Origin: Phaeosaccion multiseriatum
Lineage: Eukaryota; Protista; Ochrophyta, other classes
DNA: 64,000 nucleotides
Assembly (NCBI GenBank): GCA_965112735.1
Contig: OZ218950.1
Span: forward strand, 6,944,001-7,008,000
Reading direction: 5' to 3'
The notes below the pieces were generated by a model. It was not told the origin of the DNA, did no database searches, and saw only the letters and a list, made by a program, of their open reading frames with translations. A program made the position numbers and the translations under genes. How positions within the stretch are numbered: position 1 is the first letter of the stretch; each line of letters starts with the position of its first letter. Below are positions 28,527-51,726 of this stretch, piece by piece.

Positions 28527-28948
28527 CTCTACTCTCTCCTCTCTACTCCTTCTCCCTACAAGAACCCACCAAGAAGAAGATGGGGGTGCCCGTGTTGCAA
28601 TGCAGACCCCACACACAGCACAGCAAAAGGAGTGATGAGAGAGAGAGGAGGAGGTAGAGGAGAGAGAGTGAGAGGGGATGGAGGAGAGGAGAGAAGACTT
28701 CGATATTTGCGGTCGATGATCTCGATTTCCCCAACAACTGAAACTTTTGATTATTGGACATCTTGGACGGTTGAGTGAAAAGAAAAGAAAAACATCTTTC
28801 TCCCAACATGCAGGCGAGGAGAGGTCCTGAGGGAGTTGCCAGGGCTCTTTCCCCTCTCTCTGTCCATCTCCCTCTCTTTCCCTCTCTCTGCCTCTCTCTC
28901 AACCCACCGTTCTCGATCGGGCCTTTTTGAGGAAGGGAGCCTCTCGTG

Positions 28949-31900
28949 ATGGGAAACACCGGAGGCAGAAGCACCGGGGTTGATGAAGGCGAGCAGCAAA
29001 AGCAAGGTCAGCAGCGGCGGATCGGCAAGAGTAGTTCCGTTCCTCACCTCCCCTCCTTCGAAGAAAGCTGCGCGACAGAGCGCACGAAGGTGAAGCGGGG
29101 TCACCTTGCGAAGCAAGCATGCGACGGACAAAGCTCGAGGCGAGGGAGGAAGGAGGGGTCATCAGATGTGGTATCTTCCTCTCTCCAGCGGCGGAGGCTT
29201 CTCCATTCCCAAAGCGCCCCTCTGGACCAGGAGAGGGACAGAGGGGACCGCAGAGCAGCAACAAAAAGAGGGGGAAAGAGAAGGATGAAGAGCGCCGTCT
29301 TGGGCGAAGCAACAGAGCCGGGTAGTAAACGAAATGCTGATGAGACCGCTTTCCTCGTGCCTCAGATTTCACCTCAGCCCTCGAGCGAGCGGCGACTGAG
29401 GCATGCCGTGGAGAGAGGAGACTACAACAGACTCAGCCTGTTGCTGGGACCAGGCAGGCCCTCTGACGACATGGTTGAAAGCACCAGGAGCCACGCACAG
29501 GCTCTCCCCCAACGCACCATCGCGAATCTCATGGTCATGGCGGCGGCGCAGGGGCAGCACCTCGACATTATGGAGCTTCTGTTGCAGCACGCAGACTCGG
29601 AAACCCTCCGCGATGGAGTGGGGGGGCAGCTCCCTCTTCACGCGGCGGCTGCGGCGGGTGCGTATGAGATGACTGCCTTGCTCTTGTCTGCGGGCATGAG
29701 CCACGCACAGCGAGACGCAGAGGGGAAGTCCGCCCTGCACCACGCTGCTGCACTGAGGCAAGCAGTGGCGGCTGACTGTGTGCACCTCCTGTGTTCGGCG
29801 GCTGCAGAGGCAGAGGCAGAGGCAAGGATAGGCGCAGGGAGGCGGATGGGCAGAGGAGAGGGAGGTTATGACAGCTTGTACGATGTGGAGGGGTGGGTGG
29901 ACTCGAGGGGGGACTCAGCGCTGCACGTGGCGGCGAGGAAGGGCGCAGTGGACGCTTTAGAGGCCCTGGTGGGCGTGGCGCTTACCTTTCGAAGGGGGCA
30001 GCAAAGGGCAAGGAGAGGAAGAGGTAGTGGTAGAGGAGGAGGGCGGAGGGAAAAGGGGTGGAAGGGCAGTGCCGTGATGAATGGGGAAGGAGACACAGCC
30101 ATGGCCCTCGCCCTGAGGAGCGGTTGTGATGAATGTGTGCACATTCTGGCCACAGGGAAGCGGAGGGAGGCGCGTCCTTCTCGCCGGATAGCGCGGCCTG
30201 TGGAAGGGGGTTTGGGCAGCACAAGTAGTAGTAGTAGTCTCAGGAAAGGGAGAAGGAGAAGGAGAAGTAGGGTGGAGAGGTGTGAGGGCCTCGATGGGCC
30301 GGGCGGAGGGGAGGGGGCTGTGGGTGGCGTTGAAATGGACACAATTATGGCCGTGTGGGCCACTTTCTTCGACAACGCCCTGCTGCGGGGGCTTTCGGAC
30401 GACTTTGAGTGGAACTCTGTCTCTGTCTTCGACGACGCGGATGCACAACTGGTGAGGGAAGGAGAAGAAGAACGCGGAGGGGCGGGGGGAGTACGGAGAG
30501 GTGAGAACGGAGCCCTGACCCTGACCGGGTTGTTCAGGGGAAGGGACGGACTGGAGAGCGAGCAAGCAAGGTTTGCCGGTAGAAGCGAAGCAAGCGGGAG
30601 ACTGCTGATGGGGAATTTGGCATGGCTGGAAGGAGCGGAACAGGAGTGCGGAGGTGGGGAGGGAGGAGGAGGAGGGAATGCAGAGGCAGCGAGGAGCATA
30701 CTCTCATCAGAGGCCGCCGAGACAGAGGGGGAGAGAGGGGCACATTATGCCGGACCTGGCGTGGGGGGCGTGGTGGGTGCAGATGGAGGAGAAGAGAGCC
30801 ATCTCGAGCCACCACCACTGAGTAGGTGGAGTGGTGCTAGGGTTAAGTCAGCACCTGGGTACGAGGCAGAGCGCTGCGAGAATGAAGGGCACGAGCAGCA
30901 GGTGGTGGTGGTGGTGGAGGAGGAGGGGAAACAAGAGGAGGAGAACAAGGAGGAGGGGGGGGAGGAGAAGGCGCGGAAGAGCGATGAAGGGTGGTTGGAG
31001 TGCTGGGACGAGTCGAGTGGTGCGACTTACTTCTTCCACCAGACCACGGCTGAGTCGAGATGGAGCAGGCCTGATGATTTTGGAGTACAGAGCGGGGTAG
31101 AGGGGGGAGGGGTAGAGACAGGACGACAGAGAGCAAGGGGGGTGCGAGAAGGCGAGAAGGCCTTCGTTGAGGGGCAGCGGCTCCATGGGAAGGGGGCTGA
31201 GGAGGAGAGAAATGCCATTGGGAAAGAAGGTATAGAAGAGGAAGGGGGGGGGGGGGAAGAGGAGGGGGAAGAGGAAGAGGAAGAGGAGGAGGAGGAGGAG
31301 GAGGAGGAGGAGCAGGAGGAGGAGAAGCAGGAGGAGGAGGAGGATGAGGAGGAGGAGGAGGAGGAGGAGGAGGAGCAGGAGGAGGAGGAGGAGGAGGAGG
31401 AGAAGAAGAAGAAGAAGAAGAAGAAGAAGAAGAAGAAGAAGAAGAAGAAGAAGAAGAAGAAGAAGAACAAGAAGAACAAGAAGAAGGAGGAGGAGGAGGA
31501 GGAGGAGAAGGAGGAGTGGACTCGATGCTGGAGCGACGAACACAGCTGTTGGTACCGGGTGAATACCACGACGGGGTTTGCAGAATGGGAGCAGTGGGGA
31601 AAAGAGCCGGCAGAGCAGCAGCAGCAGCAGCAGCAGCAGGAGCAGCCGGACGAGGAGCAGGAGCAGGAGCAGCAAGGTGAGTCTTCCGGGGGGGGCGCCC
31701 CTCTGTCTGCAGGTGGAGGTCGGGCGTCGCTTAGACCTGGAGAGGGCGAGCGACTGCGGTTGCCTCTCTCCTTCTCGCGCCTACAGGTGTGTGTGGGGCC
31801 ATCAGACGCTCACCAGAGGAGGGCGTGGGATGGTGTGGCGGGCGCATGGTACGTGTACGACACAGAGACGGGAGAGTCGCACTGGGACGAGAGGCAGTGA
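28949..31900 (+). CDS. Ankyrin-repeat and WW-domain protein (apparently single exon), possible N-myristoylation
   Basis: Ankyrin motifs LPLHAAA, GKSALHHAA, GDSALHVAARKG, GDTAMALA. WW-like segments GWLECWDESSGATYFFHQTTAESRWSRP, EWTRCWSDEHSCWYRVNTTTGFAEW and RAWDGVAGAWYVYDTETGESHW. Poly-E/poly-K tract. Confidence 0.75.
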   Translation: MGNTGGRSTGVDEGEQQKQGQQRRIGKSSSVPHLPSFEESCATERTKVKRGHLAKQACDGQSSRRGRKEGSSDVVSSSLQRRRLLHSQSAPLDQERDRGDRRAATKRGGKRRMKSAVLGEATEPGSKRNADETAFLVPQISPQPSSERRLRHAVERGDYNRLSLLLGPGRPSDDMVESTRSHAQALPQRTIANLMVMAAAQGQHLDIMELLLQHADSETLRDGVGGQLPLHAAAAAGAYEMTALLLSAGMSHAQRDAEGKSALHHAAALRQAVAADCVHLLCSAAAEAEAEARIGAGRRMGRGEGGYDSLYDVEGWVDSRGDSALHVAARKGAVDALEALVGVALTFRRGQQRARRGRGSGRGGGRREKGWKGSAVMNGEGDTAMALALRSGCDECVHILATGKRREARPSRRIARPVEGGLGSTSSSSSLRKGRRRRRSRVERCEGLDGPGGGEGAVGGVEMDTIMAVWATFFDNALLRGLSDDFEWNSVSVFDDADAQLVREGEEERGGAGGVRRGENGALTLTGLFRGRDGLESEQARFAGRSEASGRLLMGNLAWLEGAEQECGGGEGGGGGNAEAARSILSSEAAETEGERGAHYAGPGVGGVVGADGGEESHLEPPPLSRWSGARVKSAPGYEAERCENEGHEQQVVVVVEEEGKQEEENKEEGGEEKARKSDEGWLECWDESSGATYFFHQTTAESRWSRPDDFGVQSGVEGGGVETGRQRARGVREGEKAFVEGQRLHGKGAEEERNAIGKEGIEEEGGGGEEEGEEEEEEEEEEEEEEEQEEEKQEEEEDEEEEEEEEEEQEEEEEEEEKKKKKKKKKKKKKKKKKKKKKNKKNKKKEEEEEEEKEEWTRCWSDEHSCWYRVNTTTGFAEWEQWGKEPAEQQQQQQQQEQPDEEQEQEQQGESSGGGAPLSAGGGRASLRPGEGERLRLPLSFSRLQVCVGPSDAHQRRAWDGVAGAWYVYDTETGESHWDERQ

Positions 31901-32700: not shown

Positions 32701-33278
<578 letters not shown>

Positions 33279-33764: not shown

Positions 33765-35436
33765 TCAACAATCTCCGTAGGACGTAGGCCGGAACGGTTT
33801 CATCGGCACACCCGCGTAGTCCCAACACCAGGCAGCGCTTTCCCCGGCCACGATCATGCCCCCCCCTCCTCCTCGTGAGGCTCCTCCTCCTCCTCCTTCT
33901 TCTTCTTCTTCTTCTTCTTCTCCTTCTCCTCCTCCTCCTCCTTCTTCTTCTTCTCCTTCTCCTCCTCCTCCTCCTCCTCGTCCTCCTCCTCCTCCTTCTC
34001 CTCCTCTCCTTCCTCCTCCTCCTCCTCCTCTCGGTCCTACAGCGAGAGGACGGAAGACTTGTCCTCGACAGGGTTGAGAGTTGGCCCCAAAAACTGTACA
34101 GGGCTTGACAATGGTGCCTCCAATGATCTTACTCCCCACTCCCACCACCGAGGAGTGTCCAATACGGATGGGCAGGACCTCAAAGTGGCCCGGCCACACA
34201 GCATGAGGAGACAGAACGGCGCCTCCTGATAGCATGACCCCTTCCCCGAGCGATAGCAGGTGGTAGTCCAGCAGCCCACGCTCCGTGTCCACAAAGACCG
34301 AGGCAGCCACCGCCCCACCCTGCAGCCGCATATAGACAGGCAGGAGTGGAGTGCCCCGCATCCACGTCACAAACGACCCGCCCAGGGCATTGAAGTTGCT
34401 CGTGGCGGTGTGGCAGCCGCTCATCCAGCTTGGGGACATGTAACGGCCCGCTCGGATCCTTCCCATCACCGCCATGGCGACGACGCTGCACAGACAACCA
34501 ACTGCTGCAAACACGAGCAGGGCCACGGGAAGGAGCAGCGTCTGGGTATCGAACCTCGCCCACATGTCGTGAGCCGCCCCTGCTGTGGGCATGGAGGCAT
34601 GTGGGTAAGCCTCCCTCCGCTCGTCTTGCCACTCGTCAATGGGACCTTGGAACAACGAGAGGAGCTCGACGGCGGCAGCAGCGCAGCCGAACAACCGACA
34701 CACTGGGGAGGGCGGGTCGGGAGTGGGGGGGAGAGAGAGAGAGAGTGGGACAGCGAGGAAGCGTTAGGGGGAATCGACACGCACGCGGCCCCATTCTGAG
34801 GCCGGTATGCATTGAAAGGGGAAGGGGGAGGGAGAGAAATGGCATCTTTGCTGCAGGGAAGGCGCGAGAGGAGACGAGGCGTGAAGGTACGCTTTCAGTA
34901 AGTCAATGAGTCAGTAAGCCAGCCAAACTGCGTCCTCTGAGGCCCTCACCGTGCAGAGCGGCAGCGAGCAACGCCCAGAGGGAAGCCACCCCGAAAGGTG
35001 CCTTCGGCATGAGCTGCTCCTCCGCTTGCTGCTGCTGCTGGAACACGAGCCGAGAGCCTACCACCCCCCCCCCTCCTCTTCTTCTTCCTCCGCGTCTTCC
35101 TGTCGCCACGCGAGTTACTCGCGCGGGGATGCCCGTCGTTGTCGCTTCCAAGGGCACCACAGTCTGCTTGGTATACGCACACACACGTACACACACACAT
35201 GGAGCGAGAGTGAGCGAATGAAGGGAGGGAGGGAGAATGGGCGAGGCCCCGCCAAATGTGTGTGTCCGTGCGTTAAAAAAAGCAGAGCGAGGCGCTAGGG
35301 GGGAAGGAGCAGAGCAGTCTCGACAACTCTGAGTGAGTGAGTGAGTGAGTGAGTGAGTGAGTGAGTGAGTGAGTGGGTGAGTGAGTGAGTGAGTGAGTGA
35401 GTGGGTGAGTGAGTGAGTGAGTGAGTGAGTGAGTGC

Positions 35437-35503
<67 letters not shown>

Positions 35504-37306
35504 GTAACAATAACACTACCACCACCACCCTCACCACCACCAATAAACAACAACCCCAGTCAGCAGCTCCCACCTTCTCGCTGACCCAAGAGAGCGAGCT
35601 AACGAGCGCCAGCGACTCCACCCTGCTGCCTGCGCCCACGATGCTGTCGTCGCCCACAGCAGCCCCCACCTCCACCGTACACCCGGTGAGCACTCCCCTC
35701 TCGCTCTCCGTCAGCAGCAGGGCCGCCCGCCCCACAATCGTATTGGCTTTGATACGAACCGTGTCAGGGTCCGTGAGCACCACCCCAGCTCCTAGGAGCA
35801 CGGAGGAGTGAATGCCCGCCCCCAGGAGGCGGTAGTAGCCCACCAGTATCTCTGTGGAGCTGAACCAATTCATGAGCACCGTGTCGGAGGTCCGGATGAT
35901 GCGGTTCGCTGTCTCTCTCCGTGCGCGGGCGAAGGGGCTGAGAGCGGGCACCTTGGTTCCTCTCTGCTGCTTGCCTACGAGCAGCCACTTGAGCAGAATG
36001 GTGATGCACACGGCCGTGACTCGGATCAGGGCCATGTAGAGGAAGAGCAGGAGGAGTGCGGTGTAACGGCCGAGATTGAGGCTGTCGGACACGTGTAGCT
36101 GCAGCCAGATGCACAGTATCAGCCCAGGGGCGAACTAAGGGGCGGATTGGGTGCATGGGAGGGAGGGAGGGAGGGAGGGAGGGAGGGATGGGGGGGGGGG
36201 GAAGGAGAGAGGGAAGGAGAGAGATGGTGAGGGAGGCAGGGACGGTGAGGGAGCAACCACAGACTCAGCTTAGAGCACGAGAATGCTCCCCTCCTCCCTG
36301 TACCATCAACATAATCTCGATATAACCGAGAATAACAAACTCAAACTCAAACTAGTCCCTCCGCTCCCTCACCATGGCAACATAGCACAGCCATAGGAGA
36401 TGTGCCTGCAGCAGCGACTCGGCTATACTCAGCCCCCCGCTCCTGCTCCTCCCGCTACTGTCGCTGCTGCTACTGCTGCTGCTGCCACTGCTGGTCCTTG
36501 TAATACTCCAGGTGGAATCCCCACTGGTAGCAACGGGGACGGCAGCAGCCGGACTGCCCTGATAGGCACGCTGACTCGCCAGACAGGCGCCCGGAGGGAC
36601 AGCGCTGCGAGTGCGGAGACTCACTCCTTCCTCGAGAGTAGCGTCTCCGTGGACCACGCTAAAGGCGTCGAGGCGACATCTGGGCCCGATCTTGACCTAA
36701 GCACGGGGCAGGGGATGCCAGTGGAGAGGCGGTGGATGGCAGTGGATGGCAGTGGATGGAGCGGTCGATGGCAGTGGAGGGGCGGTGGGGAGAGCGGCGG
36801 TGGGCAGACGAGGGGGAGAGGAGGGTGTGAGTGAGTGAGTGAGTGAGTGAGTGAGTGAGCGAGGGTCCGTTGGGGGGGGGGGGGGCTGTGGCATATGCTC
36901 CCTTCCAAATACAACACAAGGTCAGTGGTGGTATGTTTGTCTTCTCTTCCCTCTCCCCCTGTCTTCTCTCCTCTCCCCTCTCTTTTTCGCATCCTCTTCC
37001 CGCTCTCCCCTTGCCACAAGAAGCGTACACCTCCACCTTCGCTCACTCCTCCTCCCCGTTCTCTCTCACCTTCCCGTATCTTAGCCTCATTCTCCCAAGG
37101 AGAGACTTGGGTGCGAGTACGGCCCGCTCGTTGATGGAGCAGTCGCTGCCGATGTCCACGAGGTCGAATTCGCTCAAGCGCACCTGTAAATGGAGAGGCA
37201 TCGACACATTCGACATTCGATATATTCGAGGTCAATATACTGAAACTGAAACGGAAACTGAAAACACGCTGGCCTCCTCTAGTCAGCAATAGCAGTCCTC
37301 CTCCTC

Positions 37307-37345
<39 letters not shown>

Positions 37346-39646
37346 CTACTCCTACTCCTACTCCTACTCCTACTCCTACTACTACTACAACGACTACTCT
37401 CTCCTGCCTGCTATCACGCGTGCATGCACTCACCCCCGTAAGGTCGGTGCCTGTGCCAATCTTGGCGCCGAGGAGGCGGTACAGGGGCACGAGGAATACA
37501 GAGTCCCTCAGGGCACCGAGTGCGACGGGGTAGAAGAAAAAGCCCAGGAATAGCTCCACCGTCCAGCTGAGAGGGGGGAGGGATGGTAGTGGATGTTAGT
37601 GGATGGGGGGGAGGGGGGGAGGGAGAAGGAGAGGAAGAGGGGGAGGGGGAGGGGGAGGGGAGGGAGAGGGAGAGGGGGAGGGAGAGGATAGGGGGAGGGC
37701 GGAGGGAGAAGGAGAGGGAGCGAGAGGGGGAGGAGGGAGGGGGGGGGGAAGAGTGAGTGAGTGAGGCCGAGGAAGGCGAGGGCGAGACCAGTGCCGCTTA
37801 CGTAAAGCACGACCCAAGGCTCCGCCTCCTCCCTCCTCCTCACCAGCGCAGGTGGTAGCCGCTGTAGATCTTGTGTTCACCGGCGCGATACCTCCCGACC
37901 ACCAACCACTTTGTCGCAATGGAGGCCAGCAGGGTGGTCACCAAGAAAGCAAGGAAGCCCAGGGCAAGGGAAACAGTGATGAGCACGAGCGGGCAGGCCG
38001 TGTCCAGCAAGGCCTGCAGAGACGACAGAGTGTACGCCTCGATGCCGCGGCTTCCTTGACCTTCGTGTACTTCGAGCAGCTTCATGCCCTGTGAAGTAGA
38101 GCGGTGAAGCAATGAAGCAGTGAAGTAGTCACGGGCAGAGAGAGGAGGGGGGGGGTGGGGAGGATGAGGGGCGGAAGCGTTGGCGTGGGGCATGTGCACA
38201 ACAGTGTGAGAAACAACCGCCGCAACTCTTCACTCCCCTCCCCGTCTGAACTCTGGAGCGTTTCGATATCGAGATGCTCGACACGACGTTGATCGAGGGC
38301 CAATTCAACAGACACTGAAAGTAAAACTCAAACCTATCGCACACACCTGGAAGAGATTGAGCAGCGGCACACCGGACACCCACAGCACCACCGTCAGCGG
38401 CACTTTCGCGAGCAACACGAGCACCAAGAAGGCCACTGCCAACAGCGACGCTATCTGCACCAGCCCCACCCCAGCCAGTCGGCAGCCGCTCATGTGACCC
38501 AGTTCAGCCTTCCGAGAGGAGGGTATATGGGCATCCTGCGCCTCCTGCCACTGGTGCAAGGGGTTTCCCTCACCACCCTGATCATGGCTCTGGCCCTGAC
38601 CCTGACCTCGAACCCTGCTGCTCCTGCCATCGGACAGCCCAGGTCCTCCACCTCCCCCTCCGCCTCCTGCTGCTCCTCTTCCCTCTCCTCCCATCCTCCC
38701 CGTTGCCCTCGTCTCGCATGTCTTGCTGATGAGGCTGGCAAAGGCCCTTAGGCTTGGGTTGTCGAAGAGGGCAGCGGGCGTGATGGTGGCGCGGATCTTT
38801 CTAGCAGCCGCGTGCCGCACCCAGTCCGCTGTTGTCGTTGTCGTTTCCCCTCCTCCTGCTACTGTTCGTGAGATTCCTCTCGATCCCCCCCTTGATCCTC
38901 CCCCTTCCCCCCCCCCTCCTCCTCCTCCTCCTCCCCCTTCCCCCCCTCCTCCTCCTCCTCCTCCTCCTCCTCCTCCTCCCCCTTCTTGCCTGGCTGCTGC
39001 TAGCGCGTGCTCGAAGCTCCCCCCTCCTCGAATGGCACTAGCCACGCCCCCTACGCTCCCCACATGCCCAGCGCTAGACGCCCTGTCCGGCCTCACCCAT
39101 GCCCTTCCTCCCAGTCGCCCTCCACTTCTCTCTGACGGCTCTCTTCCTCTCGCGGAACCCATCGAAACCGGATTCGTTGTAACCGTCGTTGTCGCCAGTT
39201 GGGGGGGATACTCTCCTACCCATGCCGCCGCCGCCGCCACCGCCGTCGCTGCCTCAGCCGAAGCCAACACAGGGGGAGAGTTCGGTCGAAGAATGCTGCG
39301 CTGGCAGACGCTCCTAATGTCTCTCGAGCCCGAGCCAGGGGCAACAGGGCCGGCAGAAGAGGGCCCCGACCCCACCCCCCTGCCGACCACATCGTCCACG
39401 ACCCGCTTCACGAAGGCCTCGATGGCCCACGCGTCGTAGCAGAGCAAGTGTAGCAGTTCGGTGTCCGGCACGGACAAGAGGCCTTGCGTCGCACCTGGGG
39501 AGATGGGCATCGCATCATCCTCTCGGCGGCCACCAACGACGGTGGACTGGTCCTTCCCTTGTCCTTGTAATTGTTTGTTGCGCGAGCTGCTGTCCCCGTC
39601 CCTGTCCCCCACCTCGTCCTTCTCGGCGTGTGAGGCGGAAGCACCG

Positions 39647-39679
<33 letters not shown>

Positions 39680-41204
39680 TCACCAGCTGGTGATACGCCC
39701 GGACCGCCCAAGCCACCGCTCCTAAGGGTTGAAGCCGAGAGTAAGTGAGGTGTGATCACTGAAGGTGCGCCACCCACGCTGCCGCTCATCCGCCCGGCCG
39801 CTGCCGCTGCGCCTGCGACCCCTTCGCCTCCGTCTAAGCCCAGCTCCAAGTCGATCGCCAACTGTGACTCTCTCTGTGACTGTGTCGGAGGTGGCAGCTG
39901 ATGGGCCACACCGCGGAGTGCCTCCATCACAATCAAACAAATTGCCCTGACCCGCTCTGAGGAAGCCATGACTTGCAGCGCCGGCAGCTTGCCCGCGCCG
40001 ATGTGACTGGCTCCGCTACGATTGCTGCTGTTGATGCTGGTGCTGCTTGGTAGACCTGTACCCGCGTTGATGTTGCTGCTGCTGGCGTGCCAGTTCCACG
40101 GATCGCTCAGGTTACGGAGTATAATCTCTTGACCTTGACCCTGACCCTGACCCTGACCCTGACCCTGACCCCGAACCTGACCCTCACCCTGACCCTCACC
40201 CTGACCCTCACCCTGACCCTCACCCTGACCCTCCTGTCGTTCTAGTTCCTGCCTCTCGCCGCCCTCTCCATCGCTTGATGGCCCCAAAGACAGCATCCTC
40301 TCCTCATGGGCAGCAGAGAGGGCTTGCCCACCTCCTTCTCGTCCTCCCCTGCCCCCTCCCCCTCCTGCTCCTCCTGGTACTCCTCCTCCTTCAAAAGTCG
40401 CCATTTGCACCATGTCCTCAATCTCTCTCCCATTGTCCAACACGGCAGAGCTGTTCGAAGTGAGCAAGGAAGACAGGCCCTCACTAATGTCACTGCTGCT
40501 ACTACTGCTCCTGCTCCAGCTACTGCTCCTACTCCTACTCCTGCAGCCGGACCAATCAATATCGTCGCCGATGAGGGGTAAGGGGAAGGAGCGTCGGGAC
40601 TCGAAGCCCCGCCAGGCCGAGGCAGGGGCGGGAGCTAAGGACGAGTGTCTTTCTCTCCCCCCCCCTCCTGCTCCTACTGTCGACCCTCTGCTCAGGACGA
40701 CGTGGGCGCACACCCCATTCTCTCCAAAGGAGTTGACTCCAGCTATAAGTACCGGGAGAGCGCGACCACCAAACCTGACCACACCTCCTCCTCCTCCTCC
40801 CACCCCTCCTCCCCCCTCTCTGAGCGGGGCCTGCAGAGGGGTCATCCTTGTGGGGAGGACGAAGGGAAGGCTTCCCAGTTGAAGCTTGGGATTGATCTCA
40901 CTCAGATGGAGGTTGGGTGGGGCCGCCCCGTGCTGCAGCACCAACACGGCCTTGATGAGCTGTGCCATTCCCGAGGCTCCCTCCATGTGGCCGAGGGAAG
41001 TTTTGAGAGTGCCCACCACCAGAGGGGATGCCCTGCCGCTACCCTCTCCGAAGACGGCCTTGAGAGTATCTGGTGTCAGGTGGTCAAGTGCCAGGGTAGA
41101 GGAGGGAAGACCGCGTGAGTGAGGGCGTCCAACAGAAAACTGAAATCGACATGGGACACACAAAAAGAGATGGGCAGAAAAACAAAAGATACACACAGAA
41201 CTAC

Positions 41205-41251
<47 letters not shown>

Positions 41252-44200
41252 CTTCCCTTCACCCCACCCCTCCACCCCTCCACCCCTCCAACCCAGCCCC
41301 CCTCACTCACTCACTCACTCACTCACTCACCCATCTCGAGTATGTCCCCCTGCTGACTCCCCTCCGCATCCGCCTCCACGTAACACACGTCCCTTCCTTC
41401 GCAGCCCGCTCGAGCCAGCGCCTCCCGCACCACCGTCTGCTGCGTGGCTCCCTGAGGAGGCGAGGGCGGGCGTGTCAAGCGACTCGCTTCGCTCTTGGCA
41501 CCTTTTGAGCTCCGAGACAAGTGTGACATGTCGTCTCCTCCTCCCTTCGATCCCCCACCCGTGCTCGCCGCCCCGGAAACGGACTGTCCCCCACTGTGGC
41601 TCACCGCCGTTGCTCTAACGACGGCAGCGATGGTGTCGCCGTCCCTCCTCGCGTCCGCCAAGCGCTTCAGTACGATGGCACCGCACCCCTCGGCACGAAC
41701 GTATCCGTCGGCCGCGGTGTCGAAAGACTTACAGCGCCCCCCTCCAGTGCCATCGCCTCCCCCCTCCCCTCGCCCGCCATGCTGCTGTCCACCACGCTGC
41801 TGCGAGAGACGCCCCTCCCTCCTCAGCCGCTGAAAGCCCCTCCGGTCCAACAAAAGACTCACCCCCCCCACCACTGCGGCGCTACACTGGCCCAGCACTA
41901 GGGAGGTGGTGGCCGCATCAAGAGCCACCAGCGCAGAGGGCGAGGACGCGTCATCGATGGTCCGAACGGGGCCCGTGAGAGCAAGCGTGTGCGAGATGCG
42001 GCCAGCCAAGCAGGTACCGGGCAAGACGGGGCTGGTGCTGGTAGACGTTACACTAACACCGCCTCCACCAACACTAACACCAGTACCAACACCGGTCAAG
42101 CTGCTGGCGACTGTACCACCAACTGCTGATGATGCTAATGACGGCTCGAGCTCGGGATGTTCACGCCACTCGGAGCCCGACATACCCATGAACAAGCCGA
42201 TGCGCTGCCCCTCCAGTTGCTGCCGTTGTATCACCAACTGCTCCTCCTCCCCCTGCTGCTGCGGTCCCTGGCCGAGGGTGCCCCCTCCCCCCGCGACGCC
42301 CCCCCCTGCGGACGGTTTCTGAGCCCCCTCCTGCCCCTCCTCCTCCCGCCTGGTCCACGGCCAATGCCAAGGATGCTCAGCTTCACCACCATCTCCGCCC
42401 ACACCTCCACCTTCCTCCTCCGACGGTGGCGGCAGCCCCTTCTCCTTCTTCTCGAAGCCCGCATTGTGTAGCACCTCTGTGGCCACCTCGAGCATGATGC
42501 GTTGGTTGGGGTCCATTGATTGGGCCTCGAAGGCTGAGATGCCGAAGAAGGCGTTGTCGAACATGTCTACGTCGTCGATGAAGCCGCCTGCGAGTGAGCA
42601 CATACACGGAAGAGAGCGGGGCAGAGCACGCAAGGAGGGGATGAGGGAGGGGCGGAAGCGGCCTCATTTGATTGGGCGATTTGCGTATGCCATCAGATTC
42701 AGAGGGGGGGGGAGGGAAGGACAAAGGGGTTTGCGTGAATCGAAAGAAACGCACGCACGCACGCACACACGCAACACGCACGCGCCCACACACCTGTCTC
42801 GTCCCCCAGCCCCCTCAGAGGAGGAGCAGTGCCCACGCAATCTCTTCTCGCGCAGAGCGAGTTCCACAGCCTAGAGACGGTGTCGCACCCCCCGGGGTAC
42901 CTGCACGCCACTCCCACCACCGCAACATCCAACTCGTCTCTGTCTCTCTCTCCCTCTCTCTCCACCTCCCTCCCTCTGTCTCTCTCTCCCTCTCTCTCCA
43001 CCTCCCTCCCTCTGTCTCTATCTATCTCTCTGGCTCTGGATCTGTCTGTGTTTCTGGCTCTGATTCTCGCTCGAGGGTCGTTCACCACTCCCTGCGACAG
43101 GCTGTCCAAGAGGGGGGGCGCCTCCATCGCTGGTGATAGAGTACTTGGTGATACAAGATAATTTGGTGATGCGACAGGTGGTGATACCAGAAAGCCGGTC
43201 CCGCGGTGGTCCACGCCTCCTCCTCCCGCTGGGGGCGACGCTTGCCGCGCTCCTTCTCCTTCGTCTCCTCCTTCGTCTTCTGCTTCGGCGTCGGACCACT
43301 TCCCTCCCAATTGGACTCTCCCGCTGCCTGCTGCTCCCGCACCTCCTCCTACCACCCCACTACTGCCGTCCAGCCCTTCTTCAATGCCTCCAAACCTCTC
43401 CTCTTCCAGGAACGCTGCCAGCAGCGCCGGAGTGGGGTAGTTGAAGAGCGCCCCCACATCAACCTCAAACCCAAACTGTGGGTCGGGGCCTTTGCTGCAC
43501 CCGCTGCCGAACGTCCCCACCCCCCCCCTACCAATGCTACCCCCACCTCCCACGCTGCTATTGCCCCCACTCTGACTGTTCCCCAGCGATGCCCCTCCTC
43601 CTCCTCGTCCGCCCGCTCCCTGCCCTGATCTAGTGCTCCCACTGAGGCTGCCAGACCCAAATCCTGTGCCCACCCCTCCTCCTTCATCGTCGCTACCGTC
43701 GTCGTCTCCTCGCCCTAGCCACTCCTCCAAGGCATTTGCCAGTTGTGACACCAGCAGGGGTGTCATGCCTTCCTCGATGAAGTTGTCATTCGGCTTGAGT
43801 TTGAGTTTCAGGACGATCTCTTCTGTCTCTGTCGCCGTGGCGTCTGATTTGGCACGCTGCTGCGGTATCAACAACTGCTGAGCCTGTAGAGCGTCCTGGG
43901 CGAGGGCCAATATCCCGTCTTGGAGTAACGCCACTCTCGCGTGCTTTGGCTTGGATGCGATGAACGACATAGGAAGAGACGTTGCCTGTCCATGGAACCG
44001 CAACGCACCACCACACACACACGTGCACACGCACACACACGTACACGCACATACATACACGCACGCGACAGAGCAGCGTTCTTAGGCATCGATTGACTGA
44101 CCTTGCTAGATCACCAACAGGGGCATAGAAAATGCGAGCAGCCAAGATGGTAACATGGCGCCTCAACATTGCGAACCGGAGTCACAATAAAGTCAGGGCG

Positions 44201-47200
44201 TGATTGCCTTACCTTGATCAGCTCTGCTCTTGTCCCTTCTCCTCCTCCTCCTCCTCCTCCTCGTCCTCGTCGTCGTCCTCCTCCTCCTCCTCCCCCTCCC
44301 CCTCCTCCCCCTCCTCCTCCTCCTCCTCCTCCTCCTCCTCCTCCTCCTCCTCCTCCTCTTCCTCCCCCTCCTCCTCTTCCTCCCCCTCCTCCTCCTCCTC
44401 CCCCCTCTCTCCCACCCCCCATCACCCCACCTCCCTCCTGCTGCTGTATCACCAACTGCTCGCTTCGGTTGCCTGCCTCCACCTTCTGTCTCAATCCCAA
44501 CCCCCCCGAGCCGAGTCGAACATACCCGATCGCTCCGCCCCCAGTCCCTGGCGACCCCAGCCCCTCCGCTCCCGAGCTATAGACCAAGTCGCTGTGAACC
44601 CTTGCCGCGAGTGAGGCCGCGTAGGCCGCAGCGCACTCTGCCTGCGGGGAAGACAGTACCGTTGACCCTACATACAGGCCCCCCATGCCCTGCAACCCTT
44701 CCAGCACGGTGTACACGCCTAAGCGGATGTCTTCGCAGCTAAAGTGGGGGAAGTAAGGCCGCTCCACAAAGTGGGTGAGTCCTTTGAGTGGGGGTTGGAG
44801 GCCCAAGCTTGCCAAGTCCGCCCTGAGACTAGCCTGCGTCATGTTTCCCGTCTCGTCTGCAAAGGCCAGCACCCGTACTGTGCTGCTGCCCATATGCCTC
44901 CGCCTCTTGCCGGGTTGCAGGTGGAGCATACTGCGTCGCCCCTGCTTCTCTACCCCGTCCTGTCCAACAGCCGGGGCCGAAGCCACGCCGTACCAGCCTT
45001 CCTCGACATTATCGAGCTGCTCGACATCGAGGTCTGGCTCGATATCAGGGTCCTCGAGGACGCGACAGGGGATTACTCCCAGTCGCTGCTCCTCCTGCTC
45101 CTGCTTTTGCTCCCCCGGTTGTTGTTCTTCGTTCTCGTCCTCCTCCATCCCTTCCATCTCCTTCTCCCTCTCCTCGCCCTTCTCCTCCTCCCCCTCCCCC
45201 TCCCCCTCCCCCTCCTCCTCCTCCAGCTCGGCCACTGCCCTGGCGGAACTCAGGTACAGCACGCGACGAAAGATGCGACACAAACGAGTCGACACGTCAT
45301 CAGTGCCCTGCAAATAGGCTGCCATCGGAGCGGGATCATGTGCCATGACCACTCTGTCAAAGGCAAGGGTCTCTCCGCTCCTTAGCTTCACTAAACACTT
45401 CCTCCTCCCCGTGGCCCCATCCACTGCCATCCCCCTCTCCTCCGCTGCCGTCCCTTCTTCCTCGGCCCCACCCTCCCCAACAAAACTGCGCTCGTCCTCC
45501 GCATCTTCGTCGATCAGATACTCTGAGTCGTCCTCGTCTTCGTCCACTGCCGTCCCCTTATCCTTAGTATCAAAGACCCAATCTCGGATGTTCCAATCCG
45601 CCCATGCACTGCTGCCCCTACTTCTCCCGCTGCTATCGCTGCGGCCCCTACTCGAGCTTCTCCCCTTCCCTCCCCCACTGCTGTTCGAGCTTGAGCTACG
45701 GCCTCTGCTACCGACACTTGTACCCGTGCTCCTCCCCCTGCTATTGCTCCCGGTACTCCTACCTCTGCTTTGTCCTCTACTCCTCCCTCGGCTATTATTC
45801 CCCCCCCCCCCCGTACCACCGGAACTGCTGCCGCCTAAGCTCCGAACAGCACTCGGCCTTCCTCTGCTGCTGGTGCTGCTGCATATGGTGCTGGCAGCCG
45901 TTGCGAGGGTCGCGCCTGATCCGGAAGAAGCGCCCCCGGCCCCTCCTTTGCCCCCCTTGCCACTGCTACTCAAGGCACTGCTGGTGTTGCTCAACGTTGG
46001 CCTCGCAGGTATAGGGCTGGGTGCTGATCCTCCGCCGCGCGGCAACACACTCACTACTTCGCTGTTGAGCCTACAGTCCAACAGGCTGGCAGCGACACTC
46101 TCCCACAGCGCCGAAAAGCCGCCCTCTATCTTGGAGCGTGTTTCCGTGCAGCCAATGCTCGACACAAACTGTGGGCGTGCGAGGTTGGGTAGGAAGGTTG
46201 GGTAGGAAGGTTGAGTAGGCATGGTTGGGTGGGCAGGGTTGGGTATCAAGATTGGGTCGTGAGTAGGCAAGGTTGAGCATCGAAGGCACTATAGAGCAAA
46301 AGCAAGCGCGCAGCGAGCAGTTTCGGTCCCTTCCTCATCCCAACCCCCCCCCCCCCCCCTTTTTTTCTCTCCTCCTGCTCCTACTGGACCGATTTGACTC
46401 ACCCCGATCAAACCCCTCCCCGCCACTCCTCCACCTCAATCCCTGCCCATATGCCTCTTCCTCTCTCTCTCAACACACACACACACTGTTTCTCTCCTTT
46501 CTCTCCTCTCCCTCTTTCCTCTCCCCCTCTTCCCCTCCCCTCCCGCCTCTCCGTCCCTCCGTCCCTCCCTCCCCCCCTCGCCCTCACCTTGCGCAAGTAC
46601 GTCATGGGCAAATCTTGGCAGATCAGGCCGTAACCCGCTGCTGCGAATTGCGGCCCCATTACAGGCTCAAAGTAATGCTGCGTCCACTCGTCCTGCTGTG
46701 ACAGCCAGGTCCGAACAGTAAGACACCTCCCGCCCCCCACGCCTCCCACCGTGTCCGAAGGGGCCCCCTTGCCGATGGAGGCCATAATCTTGCGGGTCAA
46801 CCGCGCGAGTGCGATTTGGGACTCTCGTTGTTGCTGCATCACCGACTGCTGCTGCTGCTGCTGTTGCTGCTGCTCGCCAGTCGTCCCCCCGGCGATTGGA
46901 GCAGGAGCAGTACCAGCACTACTATGAACAGGAGCAGCAGCACCATCGACCTGCTCGCTCTTATCGTGTGGAATTTGGTGATACACAGTGGCGTGGTCTG
47001 GCACAAGGTCGTGTCCGAACCTCTCCGCCAAGGCCTTGATGTGCACGGACCGGTCGGGGAACACGGCGTGGCCGCCCAGAGGTAGCGGTACCGGAAGCGC
47101 AGCCTTCTCCTTCCCCTCGTCCTCCTTGTCTCCGCCCCCATCAGCAGCAGCAGCCGAGTACTCGGCCGAGGACGCACCGCCCACAAAGCCCCTCCTCTCG

Positions 47201-50200
47201 AGCAGCGTGACTTTATGGCCTCTGTCTTGGAGGTGCAGAGCCACATTGAGCCCGCTCGCCCCGGCCCCGATCACACACACATGCTGCGGTGGATGCTGCA
47301 TCGCCCCCTCCTCCTCCTGCTGTACAAACTGCTGCTGCTGCCGCCGCTGCTGCTGCAAACGATGCGGCGGCGTCATGTGCTGAAGATGCGGCGGCGACAA
47401 CTGATACTGCTGCTGCTGCTGCTGCTGGCGCTGAATCACCAACTGCTGCTGCTGTCGTCGCCACTCCTCCTCCTCCTGCTGCAGCCGCTCCCGCCTCCCT
47501 CGCACCTGCGCCTCTGCTTGCTTCCTGCGGTTCACAATCATCTTCATGCGCTCATCGGCGGTCATCTCCTCCGCCATCGGAGACAGGTGTCGTCGCATCC
47601 TGTGGCCCGAAGTACCACCTCCACCCTCGCCCCTCGCAGTGGCTGAAATCGGCTTGTGTTCTCTTCCACCTGTCCTCCTCTCGGGTCGGTTGCCTAGTCG
47701 TTGCTGCTGGGGGGGTGGTGACTGCTGCAGTCGCTGTTGCTGAGGCAGCGACAAGTGCTGCACCTGCGCCTGGTGCTCCTGCTTCTGCTCCTCCTGCTGC
47801 TGCTGCTGCCGCTGCCGCTGCTTCTGCTGCTGTTTCTGCTCCTGAGGCTCCTCCTCCGCTGGAACTACTCGTTCTATCTCTCCTCCTCCCCCTCTCCCTC
47901 CTCCTCCCCCTCGTCGTCTTCGTCCTCCTGCTGCTGCTGCTGCTCCTCTTCTCTGCCTTGTCTCCAAAGCCCCACCCCCTCCACCTTCCCTCCCGGTGGG
48001 GGGTATCTGCCGTGCCGGCTCTTCCGTTGGGAAGCTCCACACAACATCCTCCCGGTGCTCCCCGCCCCTGCCCCCCTTGCTGCTGCCCACTCCCCCCCCC
48101 TGTCCGCTGCCATCCCCGCCTCCGGACCCCTCACTGCTTGTGGCGAGAGAGCTCCGAGTCGGGGTGGGACCGCTGCGCGAAGGAGGAACCTCCATCTCGT
48201 TCTCTTTGGTTTGAAGCGCATCCCTCCGTGCAAGTCGCACTGCTCTCTGTTCGCCTGCGTCTGCGCCTCCACCTCCACCTCGTACCACCGTCCTGTTGCT
48301 TCCTCGCACTACTCCCACCACCTCCCCCTCCTCCTCCTCCTCCTCCTCCTCCTCCACCACCACCACCACCACCTTCTCCTTGCTCTTCCTCTCCTTCTTT
48401 TTCTTCTTTTTGTCCTTCTTCCTCTTCTTTCCCTTCCTCTCCCCTCCCAACAAAATTGAGGACGACAAACTAGTAGTAGTCAGCGACCGCTCCCCCTCCC
48501 CCTCCCCACTCCCCTCCCCCGTCCTCCTCCACATCTCGCTCAAAATCTGCAAACCGTCACTGTGAAGCGCGTCCCTTGTCGCCCTTCGTCGCAGCTGACC
48601 GCTGTCCGTCCTAGGTATGCTCCCTGCCTTGACCACCGCTACCCTGCTCCCCTTCACTCCGCTCACCGTTCCCATGATAACTTCCTGAGCTAACTCCGCC
48701 ACCCCCTCGGCCTCGGCCTCTGCCTCGGCCTCCTCGCCGTCGCCTTCTGCCCCCCCCGACTCAGAAACCAACTCCAGCACCACCTCCAGCACGCCGTCGC
48801 TGCCGTCTTCCAGCGAGGAGAAGGCCGCGATACTCCCATGCCCGTGCCTTGTCACAGATGGCAGCGCCTTCAGCAGGGCGAACTCAATGTCCTGAGGGTA
48901 GTGACACACTCCCCGCAGAGCGATAAGGTCCATGATACGACCGCACACGAACAGCTCACCCCCCTCGAAAAACCCAACGTCGCCAGTGCGCAGGTACACA
49001 CGGCTGTCGGCTGCTCCCCTTCCCAACCCTCCTCCTCCTCCTCCTCCTCCTCCTCCTCCTCCCTCCAGCCGCGCCCGGAACACTTGGTCTGACAAGGTGG
49101 GGTTGTTCCAATACCCCGCTCCCACTGACGCGGAGGAGATCCAAATCTCGCCCTCTTCCGTGCCATTGCCATCGGCGACCATCCTCACTTCCCTCCTGGA
49201 CGCAGGGTTGACGATCTTGATGTCCATGAAGCCTGCAGACAGCTCCGGACGGCCTACGCTGAGGAGATCGGGTCTTTGCTTGGATCGGTGCAGAGAGTCT
49301 GTCCGGCAGCCTGAGGAGAGGGGAGAGGGGAGAGGGGAAAGAGAGGGGCATTGGAGGCATTGAAGGCACTGGTTGAGTGAGTGATTGATTGATTCAGCAT
49401 GCGTATTTAGTTATGAGTAGCAGTTAGCGAACACAGTAGCAGCAGTTGGTGACACAGCCGCAGCAGGAGGCTTGATCTTGCTAGTGCCCGGTTTCAGTGC
49501 AGTGTCCCTTTCAATGACCCACACACTCACCCAACGCGACGTGCTCCGATAACACGTAGCCTCCTCCAAACCACCTTCGCAGAGCAGAGTGGAGGGTTGG
49601 TGATACAGAGCAGAGCAGAGTAGGGTCACAGAGGAGGGGGGAGGAAGCAAGAGCAGTGAGCACTGATGGTGTAGTGGGTGGACGAGTTGTGGCTCTGCAC
49701 CCAAGCTCACAAGAGACAGAGAGAGAGGGAGAGAGAAAGACAGAGAGGCGGGGGGGGAGAAGAGAGAGAGACAGAGAGAGAGAGCAACAGCGAGAGCGGT
49801 AGACGGAGGGAGAGGGACGCGAGAAATGGCCACACTCCTTCCCTTCCCCCCCCGGACTTGGCGTGTAGTGTACAGTACGTACCTCTCAGGCAGGCCACAA
49901 GGCTCAAAGGCCTCTCCAAAGCGCTCCACCGTCTCCAGGCGAGTGCGCTCGGTGGCGCTCTGCAGACACACCACACACGACAGGTCGAGAGAGAGTAGCA
50001 GCGCCGCCGTGCCTGAGGCCAGGTTTCCGCGCTGGGAGGCCATGTCCACCTGTGTGTCAGTATCAGTTTCAGTTTCAGTTGATTAGATTATGCTTCTGAA
50101 GCGAACTGAACCGAACGATTATCCAAACGCAAGCGAGTGGATGATTGTCAAGCAAGAGGTGTTAAAAGTCGGTGTAAAATAGACTAATCGACACTTCTGT

Positions 50201-51726
50201 GCTCACCTGTCTGGCGCACAAGGCGAGGGCTGAGTCTGGCGCAACGGACCAATGGCAGCGGTGTCGGGACATTAGCTCCAGCCACAGTAGGGGGCGGCGG
50301 AAGAAGGAGGCTGGTGACATGTAATGCATATGCATACCCGTCAGGAGCGGGGTGAGCAGACACGTCACCAAGCCAACGTCCTTAGGGAGGGGGGGAGGGG
50401 CAGGGGCAAGGGGGAGGAGCAGGCGGGTGAGAGGGGCACGGGAGGCGGGGGGGGAGGGGCGGGGCGGCTTGGGTAACGGTGTAGATGAGACGGCAGAGTG
50501 CCCGAGAAAGGACAGAGAGCATGGAGACCCCGACGTTGGGGAGGGGGGGAGGGAGGGAGGGAGGGAAGGGGCCCACTCACATGGTACTGCGGTAGCCACG
50601 AGAAGCCTGTCATGCCCAAGTCATGCACCTCCCTCTTAGTCCCTCCATCGCTTTTACCGCCACCCGCTCCCCCCTCTCCTCCTGCTGTTGCTGCTGCTAC
50701 GCCTGCTCGTGCTCCTGCTCCTGCCGCAGAGACCCTATCAACCCGACTGTCCTTCGCATTGACCCTCTCCTTGAGTCTCTGCATCCCGCTGGGATGACTG
50801 GCAGTGAGGTATACGTTGGCCATGAGGGCGCTGAATGTGACCATGACTCCTTTGGGGTCGCCCGCAGATCCACTCGTGTACTGGAGGAAAGCCACGTCTT
50901 CATCCTGGATGCGCAAAGCTTTCAGGTAGCTGCTGCGATACCAAAGCACATGCGATACCAAAGAGGGGGTGGTGAGTAAAGCAAGGAAGGAAACAACAAG
51001 GACTTCTGAGTGAAGGGGGTCGTACCTCATGGTGCTGGCGGAGAGCGACGGCGCCAAGCCCCCGAACACGCTCTCGTCTGTGGGCTGAAAGTCGAGGTCG
51101 GGCCAGAGATCCTTGGACGTGGAGCGAAAGTTGTTCCTATCCATGGCGCGCTGAGCCATCACGCCAGAGTCTGTGAGGCACAGCAAGGGGCTGCAGTCCG
51201 CCACGATGGAGCTCAGGTGGGGCAGAGAGGAGGCTAGGGGAGGCGACGGAGGATACACCGTCACTGCCACCACCCCGGCTCGCAGGCAGCCGAGGAAGGC
51301 GGCGAAGAAGTGGAGGCCCGGGCCGTAACACAAGAGCACTCTCCCGCTCTTGGGTACACGCCATTCATGCCGGAGCTTGTACGCCACCCGTCCGGCCTAA
51401 GAGGCGGCAAGAGGAGGTTAACACATGCAAACAGACAAAACAAAAATAGAGAAGAGAGTATGGTGTGTTACAAAGGGCAGGTAGGCACCAAATCAGGCAC
51501 AGGCACCTCTTCTCGGCCCTGAGAGGCCTGGGTTACCCCCACACACTCAGCCGGGCTTTCTCACCTCTTCCCAGATCTCCTTGAAGGTGCATTTGTGCGT
51601 CTCTTGGCCCTTCCCATCGTACCAGTGAGCAAAGGTCTCTGCGCCATGCTGAGCCACGACTTGCTCCGCCCTGCGATGGAAAGGTGTTCCACCCTCCCTC
51701 AAACGTGTTGGATGACACGCCGCCAT
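33765..51726 (-). CDS. Hybrid megasynthase-like protein (~4,550 aa, 18 exons): FAAL - PAI-like FAD oxidoreductase/isomerase - ACP - KS - ACP - Pls/PosA-type transmembrane/left-handed beta-helix terminus
   Basis: Manually spliced GT-AG exons, all phase-compatible: 51726-51565, 51396-51026, 50932-50581, 50380-50207, 50049-49883, 49574-49531, 49310-46588, 46168-44213, 43985-42794, 42587-41331, 41069-38347, 38088-37844, 37566-37434, 37183-37070, 36696-36373, 36134-35574, 35163-34950, 34702-33765 (13,650 nt). Domain motifs are given in the sub-features. Confidence 0.8.
34060..38480 (-). other. Pls/PosA-type NRPS terminal domain: three transmembrane plus hexapeptide beta-helix repeats
   Basis: KWLVVGRYRAGEHKIYSGYHLR, YRLLGAKIG..EFDLVDIG, KWLLVGK, YYRLLGAGI..DPDTVRI, GTPLLPVYMRLQG..DYHLLSLG..PIRIG, with hydrophobic helices between them. 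Confidence 0.8.
35330..35502. repeat. Compound (GAGT)n + (AAC)n microsatellite, intronic
   Basis: Seen directly within the megasynthase intron between exons 16 and 17. Confidence 0.95.
38715..39960 (-). other. Degenerate acyl-carrier domain 2 with large low-complexity insertions (Ser replaced by Ala)
   Basis: PDTELLHLLCYDAWAIEAFVKRV...ITPAALFDNPSLRAFASLI. Confidence 0.5.
40690..42930 (-). other. Type I PKS ketosynthase domain, catalytically degenerate (Cys to Ser, first His to Asp)
   Basis: VAVVGVACRYPG, FDNAFFGISAFEAQSMDPNQR, GRISHTL, TIDDASSPSALVAL (canonical DTACSS), CKSFDTAADGYVRAEG, YVEADAEGS (canonical EAHGTGT), KTSLGHMEGASG, GVNSFG. Confidence 0.88.
43405..43915 (-). other. Degenerate acyl-carrier domain 1 (Ppant Ser replaced by Pro)
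   Basis: PNDNFIEEGMTPLLVSQLANAL...VDVGALFNYPTPALLAAFL; the canonical motif is FxxxGxDS. Confidence 0.7.
44590..47285 (-). other. FAD-dependent domain related to polyunsaturated fatty-acid isomerase (PAI)/amine oxidase family
   Basis: VCVIGAGASG...LLERRGFVGG, FAAAGYG..QDLPMTYLRK, GGFSALWE, YFPHFSCEDIRLGVYTVLEGLQG. These resemble recalled Cutibacterium acnes PAI motifs (FTAFGYG..VPAAYV; YFPHVSSEDYKAGWYEKVEGMQG). Confidence 0.7.
48560..51726 (-). other. Fatty acyl-AMP ligase (FAAL) domain of the megasynthase; A10 Lys replaced by Gln
   Basis: AFLQYTSGSAGDPKGV, SWLPQYH|DVGL, RRPLLWLELMS, GYVLSEH, EGEIWISSASVGAGYW, YLRTGDVG, GRIMDLI, HYPQDIE. IPRTDSGQLRR replaces canonical PKTxSGKxxR. Confidence 0.85.

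Follow-up and report, generated by a model that had tools for sequence, protein, structure and literature searches.

A fatty acyl-AMP ligase–carrier–ketosynthase gene of Phaeosaccion multiseriatum with replaced catalytic residues and an apparently intact reading frame

Can a gene encoding a complete thiotemplate line lose the residues on which its chemistry depends and still be kept as a protein-coding gene? This question is raised by a locus of the alga Phaeosaccion multiseriatum (Ochrophyta), contained in a stretch of 64,000 nucleotides (contig OZ218950.1, positions 6,944,001 to 7,008,000 of the forward strand), which was analyzed as a whole and is hereafter called the window. Its minus strand carries one long gene that combines a fatty acyl-AMP ligase (FAAL), acyl carrier protein (ACP) regions and a ketosynthase (KS). 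The Lys residue of motif A10 is required for adenylation by such ligases, the carrier Ser for phosphopantetheinylation, and the KS Cys together with the first of two His residues for condensation. According to the original prediction for this gene, five such residues are substituted within an uninterrupted frame, and the protein has been retained in a non-catalytic capacity. We found that, as judged by sequence, adenylation, carrying and condensation are all dead in this gene, and that the losses extend beyond the residues listed originally. Alignments uphold four of the five substitutions—those at FAAL A10, the ACP1 Ser, the KS Cys and the KS first His—while the fifth, a Ser to Ala change in a second carrier (ACP2), had no match to any carrier profile.

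Catalytic positions in the ligase, the carriers and the ketosynthase

Scanning with Pfam and NCBIfam profiles yielded the domain order AMP-binding/FAAL, flavin amine-oxidase-like, a weak PP-binding match, the N- and C-terminal halves of a KS and, at the 3' end, a Pls/PosA-type terminal domain; an acyltransferase (AT) domain is absent from the gene in the Pfam scan. The five codons read on the minus strand as claimed (CAG at 48597-48595, CCC at 43760-43758, TCC at 41946-41944, GAT at 41370-41368 and GCG at 39432-39430), and every one of them is a single base off a catalytic codon. This proximity was set aside as a sign of age, because it does not discriminate between explanations.

The FAAL profile is covered end to end, from near the N-terminus to A10, with both the N- and C-terminal subdomains matched. 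At A10, the segment PRTDSGQLRR aligns to PKTSSGKIRR of 7R7E, the solved FAAL from an olefin synthase (KAGSIPRTDSGQLRR of the window pairs with KPGSIPKTSSGKIRR of 7R7E), and the Lys that is Gln here occurs in 115/115 homologous FAAL domains. Two further motifs are altered in the same domain. In A8, GRLKD has become GRIMD. At A5, the Gly and Glu residues that are invariant among the FAAL homologues are missing from the remnant YTTRQ, an alternative reading from the next candidate exon gives WVIER, and YGxAE is found nowhere in the minus-strand frames of the A5 stretch. Elsewhere, A3 reads YTSGSAG (a Thr to Ala change in the A3 loop), A4 is interrupted by an intron (WLPQYH/DVGL) and A7 (LRTGD) is intact. 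Measured against the 115 FAAL domains, 35 of the 40 columns conserved at ≥98% and 75 of the 88 conserved at ≥90% are kept, and the five lost from the stricter class are F265S, the A5 Gly, the A5 Glu, the A8 Lys and the A10 Lys.

ACP1 scores above the Pfam cut-off for PF00550 when both of its halves are given (29.9 bits vs 20.8). Its motif GMTPLL aligns to GlDSil of the carrier profile, with Pro at the attachment position. Since the carrier motif of most retrieved eukaryotic relatives is G[LM][TS]S[LMI], the Thr of GMTPLL is typical of the family and the Ser to Pro change alone is derived. Helices II and III of ACP1 are parted by an in-frame, Gly/Ser-rich, low-complexity insert of ~78 residues.

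The proposed Ser to Ala change in ACP2 fared differently, as no carrier profile puts its Ser motif on the segment in question, CYDAW. The profiles tried comprised a generic carrier, its N-terminal half alone, the carriers of the relatives and Pfam; at CYDAW, one of our own profiles gave no match and the others scored around zero or below, with the Ser motif unaligned. Pfam searches of the CYDAW segment at E values up to 10 returned nothing, and Pfam revealed no carrier at GLSSLL or TTTTTADW either. The sole alignment in the CYDAW region, itself non-significant, sets AIEAFVKRVVDDVVG on helix I. Further along the gene, the C-terminal half of a carrier is detected weakly, with the core ITPAALFDNPSLRAFASLI at 38728-38784, and the TTTTTADWVRH segment directly upstream of this remnant contains no Ser. 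With no profile aligning a Ser motif and only a weak remnant, ACP2 is vestigial or unassignable, and its Ser to Ala change is not established. Separately, a GLSSLL stretch at 40462-40479 on the minus strand, in a Ser-rich run ~70 residues past the KS, looks like the carrier motif of the relatives with its Ser kept; considered as a carrier site, it found no profile support and was taken as a chance match.

Within the KS, positions 6-429 of the 436-position profile (PF00109/PF02801) are covered, with ~306 bits in total. Alignments to solved KS structures and to a profile of 400 KS domains set IDDASSPS against VDTACSSS, with Ser at the position of the catalytic Cys. At the first-His motif, EADAEGS stands against EAHGTGT (YVEADAEGSQQGD of the window aligned to YVEAHGTGTKLGD). 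The second His is still present in KTSLGH, as had been reported, and the triad positions are thus occupied by Ser, Asp and His rather than Cys-His-His. The C-terminal loop GFGGTNAH, which adjoins the active site of KS enzymes, is modified as well. Compared with the 400 KS domains, this KS keeps 20/20 columns conserved at ≥98% and 53/65 of those conserved at ≥90%; 7 of the 12 changes in the latter class fall in the active site, namely C174S, then H309D, G310A, T311E, T313S and P318I in the HGTGT/GDP motif, and N422C in GGTNAH. As had been claimed, the folds are kept despite the losses, in all 20 near-invariant columns of the KS and in most of those of the FAAL. Between profile positions 116 and 112 (41326-42633, minus strand), the KS also contains an in-frame low-complexity insert of ~70 residues. 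In KS1 of DEBS, the replacements C211A, H346A and K379A all sharply lower activity, with H346A leaving ~1% of product (PMC7327777).

Could the KS have been retooled instead of killed? Ser in place of Cys, the second His, and Asp in place of the first His would then make up a Ser-His-Asp triad serving an acyltransferase or hydrolase that works with the flavin and Pls-type domains. All three triad positions are suitably occupied, the KS scaffold is well preserved, and the triad would resemble that of DpsC-type priming enzymes; DpsC-like thiolase-fold enzymes use Ser-His-Asp for acyl transfer (PMC12664062). Around 8% of 742 sampled KS domains deviate at the Cys or the first His, matching the known KS0, KS-Q and KS-S classes; however, the combination of Ser and Asp occurs in none of the 742. 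Given also that the GFGGTNAH loop is altered to GENGVCAH, and that neither of the carriers which would deliver a substrate has a usable Ser, we regard such a new enzyme as highly improbable.

Reading frame, sequencing reads and selection

The gene model was obtained by dynamic programming anchored on homology blocks and restricted to strong GT-AG sites. It comprises 16 exons with 14,712 nucleotides of coding sequence (4,903 codons) and zero internal stops, and its introns, 126-373 nucleotides long, are 100% GT-AG with mostly GTGAG donors. A further two in-frame introns, one near 51025-50933 and the other after 49858, are likely and would lead to the 18 exons of the original prediction and to a shorter coding sequence. 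Across the nine long exon open reading frames, 4,910 codons hold no in-frame stop, whereas the two alternative frames contain 151 and 123, and homology to the KS and FAAL profiles never resumes in a different frame without space for an intron. The stop-free 16-exon model makes the claim of an intact frame plausible. Two other gene models were dropped, one from a codon-usage gene finder that over-split the gene into 39 exons and one based on the longest open reading frames that left out a homology-supported FAAL exon.

The letters themselves were compared with short-read contigs from four DNA runs (~50x and ~500x), which span 39300-45200 in pieces—including 39300-39634, 41340-42931 and 43068-44227, with the FAAL site outside—and which stem from one sample, possibly the same as that of the assembly. 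No letter differs from the assembly at four of the five sites, and this agreement indicates that those four substitutions are not assembly errors. That the substitutions as a group reflect assembly or consensus errors has a close to negligible probability, even with all runs coming from one sample. Many apparent joints between contigs were rejected as artefacts, as their sides were 20-25 letters long and lay at low-complexity repeats. In all four runs, contig depth falls to ~1 in the bin 44225-44421, where a (CCT)55 array encodes poly-Gly; the drop most likely reflects short-read contigs breaking at this repeat rather than a deletion.

How long could such a frame last without constraint? In the coding sequence, 3.8% of single-base changes would create a stop. 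Under neutral drift, with indels not counted, a frame free of stops has a probability of 0.06 once divergence reaches 0.5% and of 0.004 once it reaches 1%, and the changes expected at the ten named catalytic codons at such divergence amount to ~0.1, vs at least 10 observed. As the frame would break at 0.5-1% drift and yet at least ten catalytic changes are present, the losses appear to have built up at a time when the frame was still being kept intact. Selection on something besides assembly-line chemistry is thereby favored over a simple young pseudogene; the calculation depends on the predicted splicing, and a very recent end of constraint is compatible with it.

On this basis, we assign about an even chance to the reading that the gene is a paralogue with dead loading, carrier and condensing functions. 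Selection would have kept it as a membrane protein that would serve active paralogues as a partner, work by way of its putative flavin and Pls-type activities, or both. Several observations weigh against this reading. The frame is pieced together across predicted introns, and these could in principle conceal a defect. The runs containing the locus are DNA only, with none recorded as RNA. Retention at conserved columns, at 0.82 for the KS and 0.85 for the FAAL, lies under the 5th percentile of active homologues (0.845 and 0.917, respectively), which points to some general relaxation. A representative search with the KS exon retrieved no orthologue, only giant multi-KS bacterial polyketide synthases (PKSs), which ranked at the top because scores sum over domains; a word-indexed search with the same exon among candidates of 240-763 amino acids gave bacterial fragments with at best 37% identity and no orthologue; and in a metagenome scan for an orthologue the best locus was 36% identical.

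Some of these same observations, i.e., the reduced retention relative to active homologues and the presence of the locus in DNA runs only, would also be expected of a decaying, unexpressed pseudogene—a dead copy in a large birth-and-death family, the frame of which only looks intact. The fact that losses affect every thiotemplate domain fits this explanation, and so do the long low-complexity inserts within domains. It is difficult to reconcile, however, with the complete lack of stops in the nine long open reading frames when the other frames hold 123-151, with a splice model that could be found in fully canonical form, with the ten or more catalytic-motif changes in a frame that 0.5-1% neutral drift would suffice to break, and with the full set of near-invariant KS columns. 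We thus consider a pseudogene unlikely, and the retention of a chemically dead paralogue is the reading that we carry forward.

Relatives, known systems and the remaining domains

To place the gene among its relatives, we retrieved 41 eukaryotic proteins of 1,100-2,550 amino acids that combine a FAAL, a carrier and a Pls-type membrane domain (FAAL-ACP-Pls proteins), of which the diatom Seminavis robusta contributed many and the pelagophyte Chrysophaeum taylorii a single one, with further sequences coming from environmental assemblies. Their motifs are canonical wherever found (A3 in 27/41, A5 in 31/41, the carrier Ser in 33/41), which, together with the invariance of the A10 Lys in the 115 nearest FAAL domains, indicates that the states seen in this gene are derived. 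The FAAL domains of relatives such as the S. robusta proteins annotated 'FadD21' and the partial C. taylorii protein are 36-40% identical to that of the window gene. These FAAL-ACP-Pls proteins resemble the window gene in the form of the carrier motif, G[LM][TS]S, and their C-terminal Pls-type membrane domain is matched by five of its exons. They differ from it in that they have neither a KS nor the flavin insert, and in their canonical A3, A5 and carrier Ser where found. Direct queries were stop-free and at most 1,001 amino acids long, with proteins above 1,750 amino acids out of their reach; a two-step search extended to relatives of up to 2,550 amino acids and, among the relatives reached, yielded no KS-containing member and no orthologue of this gene.

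S. robusta alone has ~18 FAAL-carrier-Pls-type proteins (P0181-P0199, P0246, P0302, P0307-P0314), annotated either as 'FadD21' or as 'D-alanine--D-alanyl carrier protein ligase', and in nearly all of them the carrier motif takes the form G[LM][TS]S instead of the customary GxDS. One relative from an environmental assembly (P0304, 2,239 amino acids) combines FAD-oxidoreductase Pfam domains with FAAL, carrier and Pls-type domains; its flavin part precedes the FAAL, whereas that of the window gene follows it.

Among characterized systems, the loading bimodule of natamycin/pimaricin synthesis (CAL-ACP-KS-S-AT-ACP) resembles the window gene in having an adenylating domain reported as inactive, a carrier and a KS with a Cys to Ser change (PMC12843615). 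In the bimodule, however, the KS-S has both His residues and decarboxylates, and is followed by an AT and a working ACP; in the window gene, Asp stands in place of the first His, no AT is present, the ACP1 Ser position is Pro and ACP2 is a remnant. In another explanation, the gene would be the vestige of a natamycin-type starter unit (inactive ligase, ACP and KS-S); it would have inherited its Ser from a KS-S ancestor and would still take part in synthesis through carriers or enzymes acting in trans. Polyene loading bimodules keep an inactive CAL and a KS-S inside a working synthase (PMC12843615), a precedent that also speaks for the retention of a dead paralogue. The KS Cys to Ser change may be an inherited KS-S trait instead of a loss in this gene. 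Of the features that mark the KS-S loading type, the gene shows the Ser, while Asp replaces one of the two His residues and the AT is lacking. Since KS-S domains keep both His residues to decarboxylate, and since the downstream carrier has no recognizable attachment site, we consider a starter unit that is still at work improbable.

Mycobacterial FadD32-Pks13 has the same order of chemistry as the parent family of the window gene: an N-terminal ACP is loaded by the FAAL, condensation is carried out by one KS, and a second ACP comes next. Both mycobacterial proteins belong to the best matches of the window gene. Pks13, however, is active and has an AT and a thioesterase (TE), whereas the window protein has its FAAL fused, ends in a Pls-type membrane domain and has lost its catalytic residues. 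The KS itself can be likened to non-condensing ketosynthases—the KS0 domains of trans-AT PKSs, KS-Q, KS-S and the chain-length factor (CLF) of type II PKSs—which have a thiolase fold without the full Cys-His-His triad. These known classes each lose one element, while the window KS has lost both the Cys and the first His, a double loss that is absent from the 742 sampled domains.

In the flavin amine-oxidase-like domain, the FAD motif VCVIGAGASG is kept (47251-47280, minus strand); the domain matches amine-oxidase clusters in Atlas and, weakly, the P. acnes polyenoic fatty-acid isomerase 2B9W (E 0.033). The last exon (33768-34703) matches TIGR02353, the terminal domain of epsilon-poly-L-lysine synthetase Pls / PosA, with 40.5 bits and an E value of 1e-10 over profile positions 520-674 of 695, the whole-domain cut-off of 423 bits lying well above this score. 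A profile built from the eukaryotic FAAL-ACP-Pls relatives matches five exons at 6-30 bits. The bacterial Pls/PosA domain comes after an amino-acid A-T pair, whereas that of the window comes after lipid-building domains. The coordinates of all these features are collected in Table 1.

Table 1. Features of the gene, with positions in the window
Feature	Position	Strand	Details
Whole gene	33765..51726	-	ATG 51726 to TGA 33765; homology-anchored minimal-intron model
FAAL domain	48530..51726	-	≥5 exons; AMP-binding and FAAL family matches
FAAL A5 remnant YTTRQ	49858..49872	-	expected YG[L/M]AE; exon end CAA/gtgagg
FAAL A8, invariant Lys of GRxKD to Met (GRIMDL)	48931..48933	-	115-homologue alignment
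FAAL A10, Lys to Gln (CAG)	48595..48597	-	alignment to solved FAAL and 115 homologues
Flavin amine-oxidase-like (PAI-like) domain	44213..47343	-	two exons; DAO, NAD_binding_8 and Amino_oxidase matches
ACP1	43371..43904	-	PP-binding match; attachment Ser to Pro (CCC 43758-43760) in GMTPLL
KS domain	40690..42938	-	three exons: 42813-42938, 41327-42587, 40690-41073
KS Cys to Ser (TCC)	41944..41946	-	KS structure and profile alignments
KS first-His motif, EAHGTGT to EADAEGS	41356..41376	-	His to Asp at 41368-41370; same alignments
KS KTSLGH, Lys and second His retained	40987..41004	-	KS profile alignment
KS C-terminal loop, GFGGTNAH to GENGVCAH	40702..40725	-	Asn 95% conserved, here Cys
Codon originally assigned to ACP2 Ser to Ala	39430..39432	-	GCG in CYDAW; assignment not supported
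ACP2 C-terminal-half remnant	38707..38802	-	weak carrier profile matches, 6-12 bits
Pls/PosA-type membrane domain	33765..38229	-	transmembrane segments and beta-helix repeats; ~seven exons

The surroundings of the gene are rich in simple repeats. A (CAGA)n microsatellite of 578 bp (144 copies, 99% match) lies just downstream of the gene stop, at 32701-33278, and shorter AGAC, TGAG, CAA, CTC and CCT arrays occur in and around the introns of the gene and in low-complexity parts of its exons. On the plus strand, an open frame of 984 amino acids at 28946-31900, with ankyrin-like and WW-like stretches and a long Glu/Lys run, probably represents a neighboring gene; a (GGA)87 array at 31255-31516 lies inside it.

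Possible role of the protein

Taken together, the observations behind the original prediction stand for the most part, and its reading as a retained non-catalytic protein is supported in part. The chemistry is dead by sequence, including at A5, A8, HGTGT and GGTNAH, the folds and the frame are kept, and the drift calculation speaks for retention; the observation that did not stand is the ACP2 substitution. The gene would then be a diverged paralogue within a family of FAAL-ACP-KS-ACP megasynthases of this alga with a Pls-type membrane end, this copy additionally bearing the flavin amine-oxidase-like insert. Replaced in this copy are the residues on which adenylation (A5 Gly and Glu, A8 Lys and A10 Lys), carrying (the ACP1 Ser) and condensation (the KS Cys, the first His and its neighbors) depend. 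The protein itself would have been held by selection after its assembly-line role ended, as we infer from the estimate that ~0.5% drift is enough to break a frame this long once constraint is gone.

What might the protein do once synthesis has stopped? Most likely, it would work at a membrane alongside active paralogues, as a partner without catalysis of its own that pairs with them through the KS dimer fold, much as a CLF pairs with its KS. Alternatively or additionally, its flavin and Pls-type domains might work on substrates that other proteins bring to it. In a bolder version, which we hold to be possible though doubtful, a whole module (ligase, two carriers and KS) has been turned into a selected, membrane-anchored protein—either non-catalytic or a new Ser-His-Asp enzyme—that modulates or completes the output of active FAAL-PKS-Pls paralogues. 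The roles of fatty-acid sensor, scaffold or regulator offered in the original prediction are speculation.

Single dead domains within working synthases are already known, as exemplified by KS0, KS-Q/KS-S, CLF and the inactive CAL. If the gene turned out to be an unexpressed relic, it would be unremarkable, of the sort that large gene families commonly leave behind. If the retention of a chemically dead paralogue is correct, the locus would represent a rare example of a megasynthase that has become a pseudoenzyme, in which a complete thiotemplate line is dead by sequence and a gene of 4,900 codons is nevertheless kept. As a natural catalytic-null copy, it would show which parts are kept once synthesis is lost, namely the folds along with the flavin and membrane domains, and it would offer a handle on an unstudied group of eukaryotic lipid-building enzymes with a Pls-type membrane end.

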